Assembly: GCA_011109175.1 (NCBI GenBank) | Contig: RDEW01000013.1 | Location: 1,122,767 to 1,186,766, forward strand | DNA: 64,000 bases | Reading direction: 5' to 3' | DNA from: Dicyema japonicum | Lineage: Eukaryota > Animalia > Dicyemida | Part shown: positions 2,881-49,004 of the stretch, in pieces | Position numbering within the stretch: the first letter of the stretch is position 1 | Layout of the letters: every line of letters begins with the position of its first letter | Made by a program: the position numbers and the translations under genes | Notes under the pieces: generated by a model | Databases searched by the model: none | The model's input: the letters and a program-made list of their open reading frames with translations, nothing else | Told to the model about the DNA's origin: nothing

Positions 2881-3310
2881 ACATTGATCCAAGCGCCACT
2901 CCATTCGCATCTTCAAGTGACTAGACAGGCACTAATTGAGTACGCCCGATTGGGGAGACACTGCCAAAGTTCATACATAGCGGAATCGCATCAATTCAAA
3001 CCTCCAAGTAATGTAAGGAATTATTCAATGGTTGAATTATATTTTTTACGTCGCCATGGAAACGCACATTTCTTGGGCCACATGATACGACCTAATATCA
3101 AGAAAAATTCAGGAAAAAACTCATTCACTTTGTTTCCAAATCTTAAACTAGTAACTTTATTCTTGATAAGTCTTTGATACAACAGAGAATAAATTGTGAT
3201 GTTTCACTAACTTGAACCTTGTCCTCGTGGCCCTTACATCGAATTTCTTAAATAAAGTACGAGTTCTGGCTAAGGTGGGTTTAAGTAATGGAAACATTAC
3301 CTACTCCTTG

Positions 3311-4145
3311 NNNNNNNNNNNNNNNNNNNNNNNNNNNNNNNNNNNNNNNNNNNNNNNNNNNNNNNNNNNNNNNNNNNNNNNNNNNNNNNNNNNNNNNNNN
3401 NNNNNNNNNNNNNNNNNNNNNNNNNNNNNNNNNNNNNNNNNNNNNNNNNNNNNNNNNNNNNNNNNNNNNNNNNNNNNNNNNNNNNNNNNNNNNNNNNNNN
3501 NNNNNNNNNNNNNNNNNNNNNNNNNNNNNNNNNNNNNNNNNNNNNNNNNNNNNNNNNNNNNNNNNNNNNNNNNNNNNNNNNNNNNNNNNNNNNNNNNNNN
3601 NNNNNNNNNNNNNNNNNNNNNNNNNNNNNNNNNNNNNNNNNNNNNNNNNNNNNNNNNNNNNNNNNNNNNNNNNNNNNNNNNNNNNNNNNNNNNNNNNNNN
3701 NNNNNNNNNNNNNNNNNNNNNNNNNNNNNNNNNNNNNNNNNNNNNNNNNNNNNNNNNNNNNNNNNNNNNNNNNNNNNNNNNNNNNNNNNNNNNNNNNNNN
3801 NNNNNNNNNNNNNNNNNNNNNNNNNNNNNNNNNNNNNNNNNNNNNNNNNNNNNNNNNNNNNNNNNNNNNNNNNNNNNNNNNNNNNNNNNNNNNNNNNNNN
3901 NNNNNNNNNNNNNNNNNNNNNNNNNNNNNNNNNNNNNNNNNNNNNNNNNNNNNNNNNNNNNNNNNNNNNNNNNNNNNNNNNNNNNNNNNNNNNNNNNNNN
4001 NNNNNNNNNNNNNNNNNNNNNNNNNNNNNNNNNNNNNNNNNNNNNNNNNNNNNNNNNNNNNNNNNNNNNNNNNNNNNNNNNNNNNNNNNNNNNNNNNNNN
4101 NNNNNNNNNNNNNNNNNNNNNNNNNNNNNNNNNNNNNNNNNNNNN
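3311..4145. other. Assembly gap (N run)
   Basis: 835 consecutive N. Confidence 1.
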
Positions 4146-8344: not shown

Positions 8345-10210
8345 TTCCGAAAACAAAGAGACCGGCTGAAGAGATGCCATCTGTTGGACATGAAGTCTTT
8401 GACAGCCCTCAGACAACTGAATAAAAGGATCTGTCAGAGCATAAAAGAACACAAGGACAAGAGATGGCAGCATCTAGTTAACCACCTCGACAGGAAAAGT
8501 ACATCCCGACATTTCTGGAAAACTCTTAAACAAGTCAAGTCGGAGCTGGATGATGCAGACGGAACCGGAAAGTCTTCTCCTGAACACTCATGACACCTAC
8601 ATCCTAACACCCTTATGAAACATTACGCTGGAATTAGCTTCAAACCATTCTCGAAACACCTGGACATTAAGGTGCGTGCCCATAAACCGAAGAAGGAACC
8701 TTATCACGAACTATTCACAGATGACCAAGTCTTGGATGTGATCACCAGATTAAAGAGCTCACGGGCGTGCGGGCCTGACAAAGTATCTTCTATTCACCTA
8801 AAACACCTAAGCCACTACGCAATTGGCTACCTCACGCATATATACAATCTGTCCATTAACTATAATATTATTCCTAAGATTTGGAAGAATTCTATCATCA
8901 GACCGATATTGAAGGCTGGGAAACCAGAGACAGAACCTGCATCCTACAGGCCTATTTCCGTTACCAGCACACTGTCAAAAATTATGGAGAAACTTGTATT
9001 ATCAGTCATTATTCCGTATCTTCCGCGTCCTATATTTCAACATGGTTTCCTCCGCGGTAGGTCCACCGCTACATACTTGGCAACTTTATCGCAGTTCATT
9101 GCCGACGGTTTTAACACCCATCCTCCGCCTCACAAACGCACAATCTTGGTTTCTATTGACATCAACAAAGCCTTTGACACTGTTTCGAGGAAAATCTGGT
9201 TGGAAAAACCTGGTTGGTAACTAATATTTCGTCAATAATTATGCTGGCCAACTTGTCTGGAAGACGTGGAAGAGTAGTCAGTGGTGATCTCAGATCTAGA
9301 TCACGATTACTACCGAACGGGGTACCTCAGAGGTCTCCACTTTCACTAATTCTATTCAACCTATTCCTACACGACCTACCTAATGATGGAGACGAAGATT
9401 TCCTGCTATTATCCTACGCAGACGATGTAGTCATTGCAATAGGAACCGCTCGACGTAAGTCAAAACTCAGACAAAATTGAACAGTCTCCACGATTGGATT
9501 GTTGGCAATCGACTAACGATTTCTGCAACTAAGTCCATCTGTTTCACTTTCACTTCGGACCGTCGTTCCAAGGATGAACCGAGTATCTTTATTGGTCCCA
9601 TTCGGTATCCAGTGACAAGGTCCCCCATTCTCCTTGGAGTCAAGTACGACAGTCTTCTCAATTTCGACTCCCACGCAACAGACATGATTACAAAGGGCCT
9701 CCAGAAAGTTAACGTTATACGCACTCTTGTTCGGAGGACCACGAGGAACATGGAATTTTCCGTTTTTACCCTCTACCAACAAACAATCGAGTATGTATGC
9801 CTCCGTTGCATGGAGATTCGGGCTATCAGTCTATGGTCCAAAGAATCAACTCGATATACCGGAAAACAATCAGTATGCTTTGCCCACGTAATAGATCAAC
9901 AGTCGATCCACTACTCATAGAAGCTAAGATCCGTAGTCGTGGCTCCGGATTTCTTCGCGTCTGTGAGGAAGATGGAAATCCGCTTCGCCTGATCCTTCCC
10001 ATGGCAAGAAAAACCGATTGGATAAGAAATTCCCTTCCCCGATCGAATTTTTATGCAAGACCGAGAGAAGGCTCTTCCGGAAAGTAGTGGGGACGATGGA
10101 AGATCACAGACGTCGAATGGCACAATTGATTGCGAGGACTGGGATCACCTAACTGTTTAGCTCTTTTGTCTTTCTTTCTCGGTGTTCCCGGGTTATTAAA
10201 AAAAGGAAGC
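8345..10210 (+). mobile_element. 5'-truncated I/Jockey-like LINE, RT ORF broken by frameshifts
   Basis: ACGPDKV, YRPISVTSTLSKIMEKLV, QHGFLRGRST, DINKAFDTV, GVPQRSPLS, YADD, LLGVKYD; 3' end TTTCTCGGTGTTCCCGGGTTATTAAAAAA. Confidence 0.92.
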
Positions 10211-13293: not shown

Positions 13294-15340
13294 ATCATCT
13301 CTGAAGACATCGAACCTAATCAGGTACCAGCGAAATCTCTTTCCATAATTCAACTCATCATAAATGGAGTGAGAGGAAAGACAATCGAGCTCAGAACTTT
13401 CTTAAAGAAGTACGACGTCGACGTGTGCCTTCTACAGGAGACGAAACTGACGCACTCTTCCAGTCCAATACTTATGGGATACATTGTTATCAGAAAGGAT
13501 ATTCAGTTTAGCCGTGGAGGACCTCATTACTCTCGTCAAAAGAGAGATCGGGCAAACAATAACGCCTTCGCATTATGATCATCCATCTCCCATCAAATCA
13601 TCGGGATCTCCATTCGAACAAACATCGAAAATATAACAACTGTCAACATTACATTCCCCCTCTTACCCAAAGGGGTCTACTTTCCCCCTGGATGTGTTAC
13701 ATCAATAACAACATTTGTTCACCCAACGACTTCATCTGATTTACCCTAGCCCCCCTACATTGCTTCTCTTTCCAACCAGTCTGTGATTTATAACTTCCGG
13801 AGCGACCGCAATCCTATTTCTTTCAGATGAAGCCAAGCTCATCTATGAAAAATGACGAAACGCTGTGCTGGATTACAGAAACGTTAATTGCACAGATTTT
13901 GCTCAAAATTTGTGCACAAACAGATTTCGATGCAGCACGGTTCAATTCATTTTATAATGCAGTTTCCCATGTTAACAGATCCAGAAAGCAATGAAGGTAT
14001 TTATCAGAGAATGGTCTATCAAATCCTAAAATAAATGTTTTGCCCACAAAACGAAGAAGATTATGAATGAACAATCGTCTCAAAATCATCCAAAGAGCAT
14101 TCCAGAAATTAGAGACCGGATTCGAGTGCTGGATAGGTAAATACAAAACATCTCTTAGAAAAAGGAATTGGATGAATTGAAAAAAATCACCTCCGCATTT
14201 AACAAGCAGAGCCATGTCAATTATGTGGAAGACTCTCTCAAAGATCAAAAACCCTGAGAAGAGAAACAGTCCTGAATTCAGCAAAAAGAACTCTATAGAA
14301 TTATGAAGTTCTACTCTCACATCTTTATTATGGGGACTTAAGTCAAAGCCTAGGCACTCCAAAACTCTATTGTGCTCGATTGACATCCGCAAGGCTTTTG
14401 ACTCGACACCCAAAAAAATCTTAACAAAGAAGATCTACTGCTGCTCAGAATACCCCGGTATTTTCATAGATGGCTCAGGAAATTTCTCATTGGTAGAAGA
14501 GGAAAAGTCGTAACATAATCCTGCCAATCGGTCTCAAAATATCTCCCAAACGGCGTGATACAGGGTTCACCTATGCGTCGCTTTTTAACTTATTCTTGCA
14601 CGATATTCCAATCGGTTCGGACGAAAATTCTATAACTCTAGCGTATGTCGATGGCATCTGCAACTTCTCTGGAAAGACTTCATGAATGGTTGAACACATA
14701 CCCAATGCTCACGTACACAGTGAAAGTCTTCGGCTTCTCTTTTTACGTTGAATAGAAGGCTATCACGTTATTCCGCTGAACTATTTTTGAATGGTGAACA
14801 AATCCCACACAAGAAACAAGCTTTGATTCTAAAAGTAAATTAGACAACATCATGACATCAGCACACACGTGTCAAACATCATGACCATCCTCAGTGCTTC
14901 GGCACGAAAGTTTAACTTCGTCAAGGTAGTCGTTTCAAAACTTAAAGGTTCCTTAAACCAGTCATTATCAACGTTGTACACCCAATTCGTCAAAACAACT
15001 ATAAGTTATGGATGTCCCGCTTGGAGAACAAAACTTGCCAGAACAAATATGGAAAAGATCAACTTTGCTCAATCCGGTATCAACAAAACAATCTCTCGAA
15101 TCATAGGACTACCAATAAGGGAGACCCTATTTGAGGTCCTTGTGAGGAAGTCGAGCGCCATATTCACCCAAAATGAAAACCACCAGAAGAACAGTGTTAT
15201 CGAAAATGTGTCGGTTCCTGAGAGCAACACCAGGAAAAGATGAAAAAATTGCTCAGAGAACTTAGGATCACCTCATGGTCATTCTTTTAATTAGTGTTTA
15301 CCTGGAGATTTTTGGCTTATTAATAATAATAATAAAAAAA
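13294..15340 (+). mobile_element. Degraded APE-RT LINE (I/Jockey-like) with N-terminal 2A-like motif and (TAA)n tail
   Basis: IISEDIEPNQVP, then APE motifs (SIIQL.INGVRGK, DVCLLQETKL), RT relics (DIRKAFDS, IQGSP, YVD) and TAATAATAATAA at ~15320. Confidence 0.82.
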
Positions 15341-15393: not shown

Positions 15394-16729
15394 TCAAAAA
15401 TTGTCTCCAATCAGAATGAAAGAAATTCTCGCCTTGTAATTCATCAAATTCAAAATGGAATACCACGTGTCTAAAATAACATCAGTTCAAACTTGCTGGA
15501 ACAATAAAGTAATCGCCTCCCTTCAAAGTTCTATAGGGAGAATTGTTTAACGAGACTCCCACACGGCCACTTCGAACTGTGAGAATCTAAATATATATTG
15601 GAGTTTAGTTAACCATCACTGAGTCACGGACAAAAGTAAATGACTTTTCAAGTTTCGGTTTTATAATAAATTCTCCGCATTTCAAATTTCCCATCGAAGC
15701 CGATTCAGGGTTTAGTTGGTCAAATCTCGTCTCGCAAAAATAATTCCCGTGGTCATATATGGTTGCATTCGCAAGTCCAATACATTCTGAAATATTTTTA
15801 ATCTCTTACCCTTTTTTGAATTTGGCTCACGACATACAGTAAAATCTGACCGCAGTTGTCTCCGATTTGACTTCTTGTTCCTTCTTGGGCCATCTTCAAT
15901 TTTTATTAGCAAAACTACCAGTAACAAAGCTTCTAACGATTCCCTTGATTTTTTGATCTTTGAATGAACATAAATTTAAAACATTTATCATAGACAATCC
16001 TCTCTCCAACACAGTTGTCTCTCCCAGAGATACGAGTTCTTGACGACCTTCTCACTCCCAGAGGTGATGGATTCGGAACAACTTAAATAAAATTCAAATG
16101 TGACTAATTCTTCCTTGAATGTTTGGATGACTGTAAACCTTCGCATTTGCTATTTTGTCATCAGTACACCTGATAAGAACTTAGAGTAAATACTATCTTT
16201 ACATTTTTCTTCCTCATCCTTGCGAATATCGGATTCGTCCGAATATTGGCTTTTTTGAGATCTCATGACGGGGAAAAAAGGTGTGCTCACCCTCTCATCA
16301 AAGTCTTCAACCATAGAAGACTTGAGTATCCCATTGGTCAAATGGTCGGATAAACTCAAATCTGTGATATTTAATTTTTATAAAACCTGAGGTGTTCCCT
16401 TTCAGAGAAGAAAAAGCTCCACACGATGAAAGAGACCCAAACGGGATGTCGCATATGTCCTCGAATGGCTGATGGATTGCCTTGTTGATAAATTCTTGGC
16501 CGAGTTGAAAGCTATTTTGTAAGATTTTTGAGTTCTCTTCGTGCACTAAAACTAAGATTGAGAGTTTTACATTCTCTTCGGATCGTAAAATCTGGAATGT
16601 TCTAAGAGTAATCAAAACAGTTACATTCATTATCACATTATTCAAGTTTTGATACTGGTCGTATATATTTTGCCAAATAAGGTTGAAGCAGTTGGATATG
16701 AAGTCGTGCATGGTCTTTGGTTCTTCCAT
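15394..16729 (-). CDS. CENPC: Centromere protein C (CENP-C/Mif2), ~364 aa, 10 introns of 22-27 nt
   Basis: Removing GT-AG introns of 23,25,25,23,23,25,25,23,27,22 nt leaves a stop-free 1095-nt CDS. It contains the motif VRRSSRTRISGRDNCVGERIVY (15990-16055) and a C-terminal cupin LKCGEFIIKPKLEK...ILTVRSGRVGVSLNNSPYRTLKGGDYFIVPANTWYSILNLMNYKARISFILIG. The 5' end and first two introns are less certain. Confidence 0.85.
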
Positions 16730-16959
16730 TCCAAAAATTCAAAAATATACGGGAGTTGACTAATTTAAGGATTTTTTGTATCCTTTTTTAGAAAGTTAAA
16801 ATCATTCGAGTTCCGATAGTATTATTTCTTAAACGAGACAATTCAGTAAATTTTTACTTCCTCATGAAATATTCAACAGAAAATTACATTTTTTTGTTAT
16901 TTCAAATTTTATTTTTTAATTTGTTTTTTAATAAAAATTAGGTTTTAGAAATTAAAAGT

Positions 16960-17789: not shown

Positions 17790-18256
17790 AATGTCGGCCA
17801 CGTATCAGGCGTCTTCTCAGAGGAAATTATTGATGCTGAAAAAGGAGAGATTATTATATAGAACTTTCGCTGCTCTATGAATGCCAAGTGAAGATTATTC
17901 CAGTGGTTTTGACATGGGATGGAGTTGTTTCAAGATGCTTCAAGAATCATATGGATAAATTATCTATTGAAGAATCAACGAGGACTTACATCCAATCGGT
18001 TGTACTGAAGAGAACGCTCGAAAGTATGCTCATTGAACATAAGCATGGGATGAAGGTATACGATGAAGAGTACGCCTCTGCTACCTCCCAACTTGTGGAA
18101 CTGGCATGCCGTGAAGACAGCCCACTGGACTCAAACGGAGATATTTTGACTGAATCTGATGTGGAGATGCGGAGTAACAGGGAGGTTATGGCACACTCTT
18201 CTTCTAAGAGAAGAAGAGGGATTACCAACAATCTGGATCAAAATACGCTTAATTAA
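17790..18256 (+). mobile_element. R4/NeSL-like non-LTR 3' fragment (REL endonuclease C-terminus)
   Basis: ELSLLYECQVKIIPVVLTWDGVVSRCFKNHMDKLSIEESTRTYIQSVVLKRTLESM: the K-I-I-P-x-V-x-T-W-D-G end of an RLE domain. Confidence 0.65.
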
Positions 18257-23360: not shown

Positions 23361-23421
23361 TCGATCAGAAATCTTTTGTGAATGTATCTTTGATTACCTT
23401 AATTAGTATTCTGAATATCTT

Positions 23422-24239
23422 NNNNNNNNNNNNNNNNNNNNNNNNNNNNNNNNNNNNNNNNNNNNNNNNNNNNNNNNNNNNNNNNNNNNNNNNNNNNNNN
23501 NNNNNNNNNNNNNNNNNNNNNNNNNNNNNNNNNNNNNNNNNNNNNNNNNNNNNNNNNNNNNNNNNNNNNNNNNNNNNNNNNNNNNNNNNNNNNNNNNNNN
23601 NNNNNNNNNNNNNNNNNNNNNNNNNNNNNNNNNNNNNNNNNNNNNNNNNNNNNNNNNNNNNNNNNNNNNNNNNNNNNNNNNNNNNNNNNNNNNNNNNNNN
23701 NNNNNNNNNNNNNNNNNNNNNNNNNNNNNNNNNNNNNNNNNNNNNNNNNNNNNNNNNNNNNNNNNNNNNNNNNNNNNNNNNNNNNNNNNNNNNNNNNNNN
23801 NNNNNNNNNNNNNNNNNNNNNNNNNNNNNNNNNNNNNNNNNNNNNNNNNNNNNNNNNNNNNNNNNNNNNNNNNNNNNNNNNNNNNNNNNNNNNNNNNNNN
23901 NNNNNNNNNNNNNNNNNNNNNNNNNNNNNNNNNNNNNNNNNNNNNNNNNNNNNNNNNNNNNNNNNNNNNNNNNNNNNNNNNNNNNNNNNNNNNNNNNNNN
24001 NNNNNNNNNNNNNNNNNNNNNNNNNNNNNNNNNNNNNNNNNNNNNNNNNNNNNNNNNNNNNNNNNNNNNNNNNNNNNNNNNNNNNNNNNNNNNNNNNNNN
24101 NNNNNNNNNNNNNNNNNNNNNNNNNNNNNNNNNNNNNNNNNNNNNNNNNNNNNNNNNNNNNNNNNNNNNNNNNNNNNNNNNNNNNNNNNNNNNNNNNNNN
24201 NNNNNNNNNNNNNNNNNNNNNNNNNNNNNNNNNNNNNNN
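23422..24239. other. Assembly gap (N run)
   Basis: 818 consecutive N. Confidence 1.
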
Positions 24240-24545
24240 TTTTAAGCACTACCGCGTTGCCATAAGCACGTAAAATGCCTAGGGTTTGGCTCGTACAGAA
24301 CACACACTTTATTTAAGTAAAGAACAGTTACTATAACTGATCGTAGAGGGAGAACCAAGGAATGCTCTTCACTTCCTTTTTTTGTGTGTATGTCCTTTTG
24401 ACTAACCAGTTCCGCAGTGAATCTCCACTGATGACAGCGTCACTCGTCAAGCCCTTTCCGCATCGTAGATGCGTGGAACCTTCCACCAGGTGAACAGAGC
24501 GAGAACCGAACCCGTGACCTAACCACTATGCCACCCGGCAGTGTC
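24240..24545 (-). mobile_element. tRNA-derived SINE (shortened head, RTE-like tail)
   Basis: Minus strand A box TGGCATAGTGG, B box GGTTCG, core GTTCCACGCATCTACGATGC...GTCATCAGTGG; the tail differs from the other copies. Confidence 0.85.
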
Positions 24546-27899: not shown

Positions 27900-30875
27900 A
27901 GAATGTAGCAGTTGTGGGAAAGATTATTCCAGTTGTGGAAGGAGTGCAAATACTCATTATTGATGCTATCCTGGCACTGGACGTCTATTTAGACAAGTAT
28001 AGATCACACAACGCCTCACTAATAAAACGTGGAAAAAATGAACGGAGAAACTTTGACCAAGTAGACAATGGGCTGGATCACATATACAGAGTACATCACT
28101 GGAAAATAACATATTAAGAAATTAAAATTATTTGATGACTCATAGCTTTATTACATGATAGAGGACGCAATGAGAATTACCTCTCATGATCGCGAGTCCA
28201 ATATTCTGGAGAAGACATCGCGTCATTCTTGGCCGGGGTATCAAACATGTTGACTCACCCTCTTCATCCAGAACCAAGAAAAGGGATTTTCGCAGAGAGA
28301 TAAACAAGAAGATCATGGTCGGGGACATTCGGGGAGCCCTACGTATACTCTCCAGCAGCGACAAAGTTCTTTCACCAAGCAAAGAAACCTTAGACCAGTT
28401 AGTTCAGAAACATCCGCCCGCACCAGCTGATCTACGTGATACGAAAATTCAAAATGATGTCCCACAACTAAATGCCACCCCTGATGATATTAAATGGTCT
28501 ATTCGTGCATTTCCTGGAAGCAGCGGCGCCGGTCTGGACGGCATACGCCCAAGCCACATAAAAGACCTCACCTCTGTAACAACCGTCGACACAGGGGACT
28601 CCCTCATCGTCTCATTGAATGCTCTTACGAACCACGTTTTTCGGCAGATATCTCGGAATATGCTCGAGAACTCCTCTTCGCTTCAAGGTTGGTGGCCTTC
28701 AAGAAGCCTTGCGGCGGGATAAGACCCATCGCCATTGGTAACGTCCTTAGGCGCCTATCGTCGAAGATCGCTGCCAGAGCAGCCACCAAGACTTTAAATG
28801 CCGAACTTAGTCGTGTCCAACTCGGAGTTGGAGTACCTAATGGATGTGAAGCAGTAATACATTCAATCCGGAATTTTGTTGCAGCCCTCCTGACGCGCAG
28901 GATTTAATTATAGTCAAACTGGACATACATAATGCATTCAATAGCATCCGAAGGGATAGAATCATAGAAGATAGTGTCTCTAGGATTCCTGAGATCAGCA
29001 GGATGGTCAGACTCTCATATGGTTTCCCGTGTACGCTGATCTTCGGACAACACGCCATCAAGTCCAAGACTGGACTCTCACAAGGAGACTTACTTGGCCC
29101 TCTACTCTGCTTTGAGTATCGACTGCGTATCATCTGCGATCAAAACTTCTTTGAACTTATGGTACCTTGATGACGCGACCATTGGGTGGAGTTGGGAAAT
29201 TGTTGTGGAAGAAGTTAAACGCGTCATCCCTGCCCTCGGGGCACTCGGATTGGAGCTGAATCCATCGAAGTGCGAAGTTATTAACGTGACCTGTGGAGAG
29301 AACACCTTTGAACTCGCAATAACGACCATTTCTACTTGCCTCCAGGACATCAAAGTCACCCGACTAGAAAAAGCGATTTTCCTCGGATCTCCTCTGTATG
29401 ATATGTCAACTGTTATGGAGGAGGAGTGAATCTGTACAGCTGCTCACGCACAATCTAAAGGCTTTGGACTCCCACATTTCTCTTTTCATCCTCAAGAATT
29501 TTCACCTTACACCACGACTTCTTTTTTTTCTACGGACATCCCCATGTTTCACAGACATGGATTTCTTGAGAGTTATCGATAAGAAGCTGAGGACCTCTGT
29601 CAAAGAAACACTTAACATCTCTCTGGATAAAGCATGGTGGACCCAATGCAAGTTACCACTTCGTTATGGAAGAATTGGGATACGCTCGGCACTTGAACTC
29701 GCCCTCCCAGCCTTTCTGTTTTCGACATATGCTTCCCGTGGTCTAGTTCACCAGATCTTACGATACATTAACGGATAGGACACTGAACCAATGGCATGCA
29801 TGGCTCACGATGTTTGGATTGGACTTAATTTGGGACTCCCGAAAAACTTCAACTTTAACAAACAACGAGACTGGAACGAACTTGTATGTTCGAGGACCAT
29901 CGATGAGCTAAAACCACAACTCGACCAGCAACGTCTGGTTCGTCTGGCTACCGCATCAACAAACGTAAGTGGTGCATGTCTCATAGCATTCCCGTGCATT
30001 TCACTCGGAACTTTTCTGGACGATTACTCCACGAGGATTGGGGTTTGCGTCCGCCTCGGAATCGATGTTTGCGCAATCAATCGCTGTAGATGTGGAGTAA
30101 TAGTCGACGCGAAAGGACTCCACGCACTTTCCTGCCGAAGGAGCACTGGAAGGAGCCTGAGACATAGTGCAATCAACAAGGTTATTGCGTGGGGACTAGA
30201 AGCTGCCGGATTCCCTGTCCAGATAGAGCCCCTAGGACTTGCCACGGCAAACAGAATGCAGGATGGAGCGACTCTGTTCCCGTGGGATGCTGGGAAGTAC
30301 CTGGCCTGGGATGCCACCTGCGTAGATAGCTTCTCCCTTTCCAATATTACAATGAGTGCGACAAATCCAGGATCAGCTGCAGAGAAAGCAGAAATACTTA
30401 AGGCAAAGAAGTACACATGCCTCGGCGAGCAGTACACATTTGAACCAGTCGCTGTCGAAACTTCGGGAATCATAGGAAGCAGTTCGTTAGCCCTGCTCAA
30501 CAAAATTNAGGATGGAGCGACTCTGTTCCCGTGGGATGCTGGGAAGTACCTGGCCTGGGATGCCACCTGCGTAGATAGCTTCTCCCTTTCCAATATTACA
30601 ATGAGTGCGACAAATCCAGGATCAGCTGCAGAGAAAGCAGAAATACTTAAGGCAAAGAAGTACACATGCCTCGGCGAGCAGTACACATTTGAACCAGTCG
30701 CTGTCGAAACTTCGGGAGTCATAGGAAGCAGTTCGTTAGCCCTGCTCAACAAAATTAGATCGTTAGTCGCTAAAAAAAGGAGGGATGAGAGAAGAGCTGG
30801 CTCATTGAGCGCATCTTTTTACAGATCGTAAGGAGAAATGCGCTCTCAATCCTAAGAGCGGCTAGTAGCCTTTAA
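27900..30875 (+). mobile_element. Near full-length CRE-clade non-LTR retrotransposon (RT plus REL endonuclease), frameshifted
   Basis: SSGAGLDGIRP, LVAFKKPCGGIRPIAIGNVLRRL, QLGVGVPNGCE, LDIHNAFNS, QGDLLGP, YLDD (~29163), CRCG..HALSC zinc knuckle, DGATL..WDATCVD, FEPVAVETSG. Confidence 0.93.
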
Positions 30876-33314: not shown

Positions 33315-34698
33315 AGTTTTTCAATCAGAAGGGACCCTAGAATTCAAAGAGTATCTTGATACCTGTACAGAAGGCGAATAAACCAAGATCTAAGGTGGAG
33401 AACCTCCGTCCGGTCATATTAATGAATTCACTTCGGAAAATTCTGGCGAACATAACATTACAAAGGATGGAAGGACGCCTAGATACTTTTCTGTCGCTAT
33501 ACCACAGCGGATTCCGAAAAGGAAGATCTACTTCCGATGTTTTGTGGTCCCACAAGTGGAGATCTGCGGCCGTTCAAAAGTTCAAAATATCTACAACCAT
33601 CCTCGGAATCGACATTTCGAGGGCCTTCGACTCTGTCGACAGACGGAGGCTAATACTGGTTTTGGAAAGTTTCCTATACGCTTCCACTGTCAGAATGGCC
33701 ACCACCCTCCTAGCTGATACTTGGCTCACTGTATGAGTCGGGGGAGCCTTGTCTCGCCGATTTGAGACGACTGCTGGCACTCCACAGGGAGACCCATTAT
33801 CACCTATACTTATTGTCATATACCTCGATGCTGCTTTACGGAAGGCAAAACCGATAATGGGTGAAAAGACAAACATTATTGCGTATGCTGACGACGTAGA
33901 CTTTATTTCAAACGACAAAATACCGCTCACCCGCTTGATGGAAGAAGTGTCCGGAAGACTAGCCGAATGGTTCCTAACAGTAAATCCGGACAAGACTGAC
34001 GAAACTGAACTCAAGAGGGAAAAAACAAGGACGGAGGAGTACTGGCGCAAATGCAAAAAGCTTGGCTCCCTCCTAGGAGACCATGAAGAAATTACGAGAA
34101 GGAAAACCCTACCACAAACTGCCCTCTCCAGATTAAAGAACACCTGGCTCCACAAAAAGGGCCTTGACATTATAACAAAAACTCGATTATACAACTCGCT
34201 AGTGAAACCCATACTACTATATAACGCTGGTACTTGGGCCTGCTCAAGAAATGAACTGAAGAGGCTTAATGCGTTTCATAGAGACCAACTACGGCATATG
34301 ATGTTCGAAAGAAGTGATACGAGGATGTCATCTAATCTTTTTTATAAGAGGACGAAGACCTCAGAAATTTCTAATGAGATTCTGGATACACGATGGAGGC
34401 TTTTCGGCCATATTCTGCGACTGGACCTAGATGCCCCCGCGAACGTAGCCATGGAGGATTACTTCATGTTGGAGGCCCCCCGTTTCCGTGGTCGCCCAAG
34501 GACGACACTGGCAGTCGTTCTCGACGAGGACCTCAAAGAAATGGGACGGCATCTTGGAAGTGGAGAGGATCTTGACTGGTTGCGCACTGCGGCTTTGAAT
34601 AGGAGGAAGTGGATGAAACTAACCAGTGATTTGCTAACTCGTGTTGCACATGCTTTGTCAAGTCCTATGACATAGCGATAAGTGCTTATAATAATAAT
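33315..34698 (+). mobile_element. 5'-truncated RTE-clade LINE with (TAA)n tail and 15-bp TSD
   Basis: NLRPVILMNSLRKILA, GFRKGRST, DISRAFDSV, GTPQGDPLSP, YADD; TSD AATATTTATATGCAG at 33300-33314 and 34699-34713. Confidence 0.95.
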
Positions 34699-47624: not shown

Positions 47625-49004
47625 AGTTTTTCAATCAGAAGGGACCCTAGAATTCAAAGAGTATCTTGATACCTGTACAGAAGGCGAATAAACCAAGATC
47701 TAAGGTGGAGAACCTCCGTCCGGTCATATTAATGAATTCACTTCGGAAAATTCTGGCGAACATAACATTACAAAGGATGGAAGGACGCCTAGATACTTTT
47801 CTGTCGCTATACCACAGCGGATTCTGAAAAGGAAGATCTACTTCCGATGTTTTGTGGTCCCACAAGTGGAGATCTGCGGCCGTTCAAAAGTTCAAAATAT
47901 CTACAACCATCCTCGGAATCGACATTTCGAGGGCCTTCGACTCTGTCGACAGACGGAGGCTAATACTGGTTTTGGAAAGTTTCCTAGACGCTTCCACTGT
48001 CAGAATGGCCACCACCCTCCTAGCTGATACTTGACTCACTGTATGAGTCGGGGAGCCTTGTCTCGCCGATTTGAGACGACTGCTGGCACTCCAGGGAGAC
48101 CCATTATCACCTATACTTTTTGTCATATACCTTGAAGCTGCTTTACGGAAGGCAAAACCGATAATGGGTGAAAAGACAAACATTATTGCGTATGCTGACG
48201 ACGTAGACTTTATTTCAAACGACAAAATACCGCTCACCCGCTTGATGGAAGAAGTGTCTGGATGACTAGCCGAATGGTTCCTAACAGTAAATCCGGACAA
48301 GACTGACGAAACTGAACTCAAGAGGGAAAAAACAAGGACGGAGGAGTACTGGCGCAAATGCAAAAAGCTTGGCTCCCTCCTAGGAGACCATGAAGAAATT
48401 ACGAGAAGGAAAACCCTAGCACAAACTGCCCTCTCCAGATTAAAGAACACCTGGCTCCACAAAAAGGGCCTTGACATTATAACAAAAACTCGATTATACA
48501 ACTCGCTAGTGAAACCCATACTACTGTATAACGCTGGTACTTGGGCCTGCTCAAGAAATGAACTGAGAGGCTTAATGCGTTTCATAGAGACCAACTACGG
48601 CATATGATGTTCGAAAGAAGTGATACGAGGATGTCATCTAATCTTTTTTATAAGAGGACGAAGACCTCAGAAATTTCTAATGAGATTCTGGATACACGAT
48701 GGAGGCTTTTCGGCCATATTCTGCGACTGGACCTAGATGCCCCGCGAAACGTAGCCATGGAGAATTACTTCATGTTGGAGGCCCCCCGTTTCCGTGGTCG
48801 CCCAAGGACGACACTGGCAGTCGTTCTCGACGAGGACCTCAAAGAAATGGGACGGCATCTTGGAAGTGGAGAGGATCTTGACTGGTTGCGCACTGCGGCT
48901 TTGAATAGGAGGAAGTGGATGAAACTAACCAGTGATTTGCTAACTCGTGTTGCACCTGCTTTGTCAAGTCCTATGACATAGCGATAAGTGTTTATAATAA
49001 TAAT
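47625..49004 (+). mobile_element. Duplicate of the truncated RTE with the same 15-bp TSD
   Basis: TSD AATATTTATATGCAG at 47610-47624 and 49005-49019; a few private stops and indels. Confidence 0.93.

Follow-up and report, generated by a model that had tools for sequence, protein, structure and literature searches.

The literature defines the CENP-C family by a conserved sequence, the CENP-C motif (PMC549713). Within the motif, the [Y/F/W]W pair counts as the core, and its mutation weakens binding to CENP-A nucleosomes. [quoted passage not shown] Mutation of R, Y or W in the motif weakens binding (PMC4830207). The locus described here lies in a 64,000-nucleotide stretch of contig RDEW01000013.1 of the dicyemid Dicyema japonicum, a parasite of octopuses (the window), and raises the question of whether an animal can retain a working CENP-C in which the arginine anchor has been kept and the aromatic hook for the CENP-A tail has been lost. 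An earlier note, made from the letters alone, had drawn attention to such a peptide, and the roles that it assigned to the arginine and to the YW pair agree with published work (PMC6776904, PMC4830207).

Gene model, second haplotype and surroundings

The gene occupies 15394..16729 on the minus strand (ATG at 16729, TGA at 15396-15394) and is modelled as 11 exons specifying 364 amino acids: exons 1-4 at 16729-16625, 16601-16571, 16545-16387 and 16361-16203, exons 5-8 at 16179-16105, 16081-15983, 15957-15919 and 15893-15810, and exons 9-11 at 15786-15614, 15586-15493 and 15470-15394. The model was obtained by listing GT..AG stretches of 18-44 nt and joining the open frames between them, so that splice sites are inferred from sequence and frame. 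The ten introns of the model are each GT-AG and 22-27 nt long, and once they are removed the coding sequence is open, as had been claimed. Introns of less than 30 nt have been reported among animals for myxobolid myxozoans and D. japonicum alone (PMC13644364). The least certain exon is exon 5 (16179-16105), which may be skipped within a 121-nt intron with the frame intact to give a product of 339 aa; skipping it leaves the boundaries of the motif-bearing exon in place. An exact look-up with the 140-aa open reading frame at 16310-16729 matched no recorded protein, and the N-terminal exons matched no Pfam family.

The exon that carries the CENP-C motif (15983..16081, minus strand) is 99 bp long and is flanked on both sides by phase-1 introns. 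[quoted passage not shown]

Five sequencing runs matched the window, of which X1-X4 derive from a single 2019 sample and each contain about half of the sampled words; contigs of X1, X2, X3 and X5 were compared with the window, and those of X1-X3 supply a second version of the gene. The X1-X3 contigs that cover the gene are unspliced, and hence represent DNA, and differ from the window by approximately 1.7%. When classified on the gene model, the 26 differences comprise 7 intronic changes, 17 synonymous third positions and two non-synonymous changes (R44K and Y210D), with no frameshift or stop among them, which corresponds to a pN/pS of 0.03 for the coding sequence (binomial P 2.8e-10, with the proportion of synonymous sites as the expectation). 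The gene thus evolves under strong purifying selection, and as 17 of the 19 exonic differences are synonymous the frames of exons 1, 3, 4, 6, 9 and 10 are confirmed. Within the full codons of the motif exon the three differences (16041, 16050 and 16059) are all synonymous third positions, and the codons for N199 and C200 (16011-16016), which are central to the argument below, are the same in the X1-X3 contigs at depths of about 35 to over 700.

These data bear directly on base-call errors, which the earlier note had named as a possible weakness and which have now been checked in the reads of other runs. The scaffold gaps and many repeats nearby might invite the suspicion that the unusual motif reflects a sequencing or assembly error, or a decaying pseudogene. 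However, three runs of one sample carry the same asparagine and cysteine codons, and the coding sequence as a whole contains neither frameshift nor stop; since the second haplotype has the same codons and a pN/pS of 0.03, base-call error and pseudogene status are set aside as far as DNA can show, and we regard this explanation as extremely unlikely.

Some minor features of the haplotype comparison may be recorded here. Synonymous sites in the gene differ by 7.5% between haplotypes, as compared to 2.9% for the mini-introns (7 of 241 nt), in both cases from small numbers, and one mini-intron varies in length, an A being inserted behind 16102 to change it from 23 to 24 nt. Selection may act on the mini-introns in their own right, or the sample may mix two dicyemid lineages. 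In addition, the X1-X3 and X5 contigs break at 16904-16943, approximately 200 bp upstream of the start codon, with long loose ends on both sides, which suggests an insertion or deletion, or a repeat boundary, in the other haplotype.

The published D. japonicum assembly has 36.7% G+C, 4.1% gaps, 49% repeats rich in LINEs and approximately 5,000 predicted genes (PMC6736024), and the supplements of that genome paper make no mention of CENP, centromere or histone. The window is eukaryotic in character, with about 35% G+C, assembly gaps and many LINE fragments, and so agrees well with these figures; the myxozoan Henneguya, with 29% G+C, is a poorer match. Runs of N of approximately 800 bases each are found at about 3300-4130 and about 23400-24240. 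Fragmentary open reading frames resembling the reverse transcriptase or endonuclease of non-LTR retrotransposons are located at 8615-9220, 13369-13578, 17888-18256 and 33749-34675 on the plus strand and at 33574-34212 and 47884-48594 on the minus strand; they include two near-identical antisense frames approximately 14 kb apart, and such fragments lie on both sides of the CENP-C gene. A 346-aa open reading frame at 29791-30831 on the plus strand contains a stretch of approximately 100 aa (DGATLFPWDAGKYLAWDATCVDSF...LALLNKI) twice, with an X between the copies; it looks as if sequence had been duplicated at a gap or ambiguous base, and the frame may therefore stem from misassembly of a repeat element.

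A CENP-C motif with an altered centre

The motif itself, G185-Y207 (GVRRSSRTRISGRDNCVGERIVY; 15990..16058, minus strand), was delimited by translation, by a skeleton pattern and by profile alignment. The minus-strand translation of 15981-16070 reads PSPLGVRRSSRTRISGRDNCVGERIVYDKC, and the peptide first pointed out, at 15990-16055, corresponds exactly to V186..Y207. Two portions of the motif are conserved. The first is the arginine-rich half (RRSSRTR) with the anchor R191-T-R193 (16032..16040, minus strand), which the gap-free alignment places as the equivalent of R717/R719 of rat CENP-C, and the second is the C-terminal half, G202-E-R-I-V-Y207 (15990..16007, minus strand), as seen by translation and by comparison with canonical motifs. 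Between them, at 16011..16025 on the minus strand, translation and alignment place G-R-D-N-C where canonical motifs have P-L-x-[Y/F]-W, and the second haplotype is identical in this segment. Relative to the canonical motif, as read from the gap-free profile alignment, P is thus replaced by G, L by R, Y/F by N and W by C. N199 is encoded by AAC (16016-16014) and C200 by TGT (16013-16011), each a single base from TAC (Y) and TGG (W), respectively, as had been observed.

The spacing of the motif is unchanged, in agreement with the original reading of the peptide. A profile constructed from 19 motif-plus-cupin tails aligns GVRRSSRTRISGRDNCVGERIVYDKYQK without gaps to glRRSkRtRvkPLafWknEkliYeraee, the peptide itself being aligned gap-free, at 7.0 bits, to glRRSkRtRvkPLafWknEkliY. 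When set against the 72 distinct canonical motifs listed, the positions that are free in the search pattern match frequent residues (G1, V2, S5, the last at 86%, G18, I21 and V22), while positions 12, 13, 15 and 16, canonically P, L, Y/F and W, are G, R, N and C, and position 17, canonically K/R, is V. Six of the ten vertebrate identities RxxRxxxxPLxYWxGERxxY (PMC4830207) are kept, namely R, R, G, E, R and Y, and P, L, Y and W are gone. A count by hand gives 9 identities with the 23 positions of the vertebrate consensus NVRRTKRXRLKPLEYWRGERVBY (PMC4830207), but not one within the eight residues of the central LKPLEYWR. The skeleton R..R.R.{8}GER..Y has a single match in the six frames of the window, and 200 block shuffles contained no match.

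In D. japonicum, minimal signals suffice for the splicing of introns as short as 20-27 nt (PMC13644364), and an in-frame GT..AG stretch of 27 nt sits within the motif (16046-16020). It could accordingly be argued that the mRNA differs at the motif, either because this stretch is spliced or because another exon is used, and that GRDNC is never translated. Splicing of 16046-16020 would, however, delete the conserved arginine anchor without restoring a hook, and at 52% A+T the stretch falls below the ten accepted introns, which range from 60 to 84%. Moreover, the haplotype differences in the RRSS codons are synonymous third positions (16041, which the candidate intron would include, and 16050, immediately 5' of that intron), and both flanks of the motif lie in one frame at canonical spacing. 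We therefore judge an artefact of the gene model to be very improbable.

Under the strict definition of the CENP-C motif, R....P..[YFW]W, given by Kato 2013 in the form quoted by Xiao 2017 (PMC5710141), neither the 364-aa model nor the six translated frames of the window gave a match; in particular, no second CENP-C motif with a canonical YW pair, which would have spoken against loss of the hook, occurs in any frame of the 64-kb window. The 364-aa protein also contains no second, central-region module and no WW module. A speculative substitute for the hook is R122-V-S-T-P-F-F128 (16273..16293, minus strand), the sole place outside the cupin where an arginine precedes a pair of aromatic residues, albeit with a spacing that falls three residues short of that in RxSxxPSxWW, the consensus of the central region in vertebrates (PMC4830207).

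Besides the motif, Mif2 reads AT-rich DNA via clusters rich in arginine and lysine (RK clusters) and an AT hook (PMC5710141). By the definition of Xiao et al. 2017 (PMC5710141), the Dicyema protein has a first RK cluster at residues 187-197 (net +5), which overlaps the motif, and a second at residues 204-244 (net +10; exons 6-8, 15829..16001, minus strand), so that RK clusters overlap and adjoin the motif as would be expected of the CENP-C family. An AT hook was not found in the 364-aa model.

Family membership and the C-terminal cupin

As single exons are too short for family libraries, we relied on profile hidden Markov models built in-script. The published motif, written as R-R-x-x-R-x-R-x-x-P-L-x-[YF]-W-x-x-E-[RK]-x-x-[YF], was converted to a degenerate DNA pattern and used to scan metagenome contigs, which returned at least 120 loci (L001-L120), 116 of those listed having an uninterrupted CENP-C-type motif. 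The 19 distinct open tails among the matches listed that extend from motif to stop codon with a visible cupin were aligned to give the motif-plus-cupin profile, and the cupin-only profile was derived from the same alignment by cutting off the motif; locus L003, a metagenome locus with a vertebrate-type motif, was left out of every comparison. All 18 distinct source sequences of the cupin profile match Pfam CENP-C_C (PF11699), with a best E of 1.3e-25 (alignment A1). Judging from motif type and a few source names, this 63-letter pattern drew apparent CENP-C motifs from diatom-, fungus-, plant- and insect-like eukaryotes, and it may offer an inexpensive means of gathering such genes from metagenomic data.

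The cupin-only profile matched residues 272-360 of the spliced model (exons 9-11; 15409..15724, minus strand) with 31.1 bits (E 1.2e-11 for one sequence) and without large gaps, in agreement with the earlier assertion that the cupin is intact. In comparison, 2000 shuffles of the protein scored at most 5.7 bits, and among 1448 open pieces of the window the highest score, 8.5 bits, was that of exon 10 of the cupin itself. The motif-plus-cupin profile gave 40 bits (E 2.1e-14 for one sequence). As we read the alignment, the Dicyema cupin has all four residues (G, K, G and N) that never vary among the reference sequences. The distance from the end of the motif (residue 207) to the core of the cupin (approximately residue 279) is 71 aa, which accords with the vertebrate rule that the motif lies no more than about 100 aa upstream of the cupin (PMC4830207).

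Searches with individual exons were less informative. The best Pfam family for the 31-aa exon 10 was CENP-C_C (E 0.024, 15.3 bits, under the 29-bit cut-off), with Cupin_3 also reported, and when the motif exon and two exons of the cupin were compared with PDB sequences, no relevant match was returned. An exhaustive search with the 57-aa cupin exon yielded neither a self match nor a CENP-C, returning repeat and Ig-like proteins that were judged spurious; the missing self match indicates that the library contains neither the protein described here nor any close relative. A CENP-C orthologue from a related species was not found in the libraries searched. In a feature-based search of the ESM Atlas, exon 9 led to Ig-like clusters and exon 10, weakly, to the cupin clan, with no lead above 0.9.

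A separate observation concerns the Ig-like matches. The first cupin exon contains (15614-15784, minus strand) the sequence GLANATIYDHGNYFCET, similar to the D-x-G-x-Y-x-C pattern of the F strand in Ig domains, and the exon draws weak PDB matches to Fc receptors as well as Ig and repeat proteins and Ig clusters of the Atlas. We judged the Ig resemblance of this segment, just before the cupin, to be due to chance.

It might be proposed from the single-exon searches, in which no Pfam or PDB match is significant and the first cupin exon on its own draws spurious Ig-like and repeat matches, that the gene encodes an unrelated cupin protein with a chance arginine-rich peptide. This is highly unlikely in view of the cupin profile score of 31 bits and the 40 bits for the whole tail, of a motif skeleton that is unique in the window and absent from shuffles, and of the motif-to-cupin distance, exon phase and RK clusters, all of which fit CENP-C. 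Since cupin profile, motif alignment, motif-cupin distance, exon phase and RK clusters point in the same direction, we consider the gene very likely to be a CENP-C, and the grouping with CENP-C/Mif2, on which the earlier note had made its interpretation depend, is borne out by the profile scores (E 2e-14 for the whole tail).

Identity as KNL2/M18BP1 was considered and rejected, as the protein ends in a CENP-C-type cupin and no SANTA or Myb match was obtained on the exons scanned. M18BP1/KNL2 proteins are not known to have a C-terminal CENP-C cupin, and because the Dicyema gene has one it was assigned as CENP-C, not KNL2. What these proteins share with it is a related nucleosome-binding motif (CENPC-k; PMC4830207, PMC11879092).

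Attachment to centromeric chromatin in Dicyema and in other lineages

The reading that best accounts for these results, to which we would assign a probability of roughly 0.7, is that the gene specifies a functional CENP-C/Mif2 orthologue with a degenerate nucleosome-binding motif, in which the aromatic hook has been lost, the arginine anchor, RK clusters and cupin have been kept, and centromere specificity comes from elsewhere. To judge from the sequence, the link between CENP-C and centromeric chromatin has probably been altered in this animal. The protein would be a minimal CENP-C of 364 aa, with an N-terminal region, one motif in the usual mini-exon, RK clusters and a C-terminal dimerising cupin. 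[quoted passage not shown] With the aromatic hook for that tail gone, another source of centromere specificity would be needed, and it could be supplied by a re-shaped contact with CenH3, by DNA, or by a partner protein. A further proposal, which we put forward tentatively and regard as doubtful, is that the dicyemid CENP-C/CenH3 interface has been rewired as such, in that the CenH3 tail is no longer read and attachment relies on acidic-patch and DNA contacts together with a lineage-specific contact or partner. Were this so, Dicyema would represent a natural animal case of an inner kinetochore midway in uncoupling from CENP-A.

The principal alternative in evolutionary terms is that the gene is a subfunctionalised paralogue, in which case another CENP-C would keep the hook and read CenH3, the present copy being accessory in the manner of Plasmodium AKiT9/AKiT10 beside SEA1. 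There is precedent for such an arrangement, as Apicomplexa have CENP-C paralogues without the CENP-A-binding motif while another copy keeps it (PMC9418836). Against this, R....P..[YFW]W is found in no frame of the window, the published genome has only approximately 5,000 predicted genes (PMC6736024), and the Dicyema gene has kept the complete architecture, including the ancestral exon for the motif and the two flanks of the motif, as an orthologue should. We consider a paralogue unlikely.

The functional orthologue with a degenerate motif, which we prefer, resembles the canonical CENP-C/Mif2/Cnp3 proteins (PF11699 and the 24-aa CENPC motif) in having one motif upstream of a C-terminal cupin, an arginine-rich first half and a GERxxY second half of that motif, a motif exon of approximately 100 bp bounded by phase-1 junctions, RK clusters that surround the motif, and strong negative selection. 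It differs in having G-R-D-N-C where these have P-L-x-[Y/F]-W and in its length of 364 aa, as compared to 549-943 aa in the survey of PMC549713. Putative CENP-C proteins of sharks and teleosts (Kral 2016, PMC4830207) likewise bear a cupin and a partial motif, and in the shark the motif position is without tryptophans. These fish candidates, however, keep RxxxxPxxWW, lose most of the remainder and have a central-region WW module, whereas the Dicyema protein shows the reverse, with the flanks kept and the hook lost. AKiT9/AKiT10 of Apicomplexa (PMC9418836) are also inner-kinetochore proteins with a CENP-C cupin and no functional CENP-A-binding motif, but they are entirely without the motif and stand beside a canonical-motif paralogue (SEA1, Toxoplasma CENP-C), while the Dicyema gene keeps both flanks and is not known to have a paralogue of the canonical type. 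In Umbelopsidales fungi CENP-C has been kept after loss of CENP-A (bioRxiv 10.1101/706580), and the pair can thus be uncoupled.

If our preferred reading is correct, the arginine anchor and the aromatic hook, the two halves of the binding mode, have been separated naturally in an animal CENP-C that is under strong purifying selection. The gene would provide a concrete test of the extent to which targeting to centromeres depends on the tail of CenH3, and it fits the wider plasticity of the inner kinetochore in fast-evolving parasites. One diverged motif is not surprising by itself, as dicyemids evolve very fast.

We found no description in the literature of a CENP-C with the flanks kept and the hook lost. 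A word search with the cupin alignment A1 retrieved 84 proteins, mostly diatoms by the few source names given, a sample too narrow for a eukaryote-wide rate of hook loss. The strict motif is missing in 7 of the 21 matches with enough upstream sequence; five of these seven show no motif in the predicted part and may be truncated or mis-predicted models, and the other two, P0039 and P0059, have a recognizable variant of the motif that keeps [Y/F]W. Every identifiable motif in this diatom-rich sample retains [Y/F/W]W though P or L varies, as in FAFWKNER, PIQWWKNER and PIEWWKSER.
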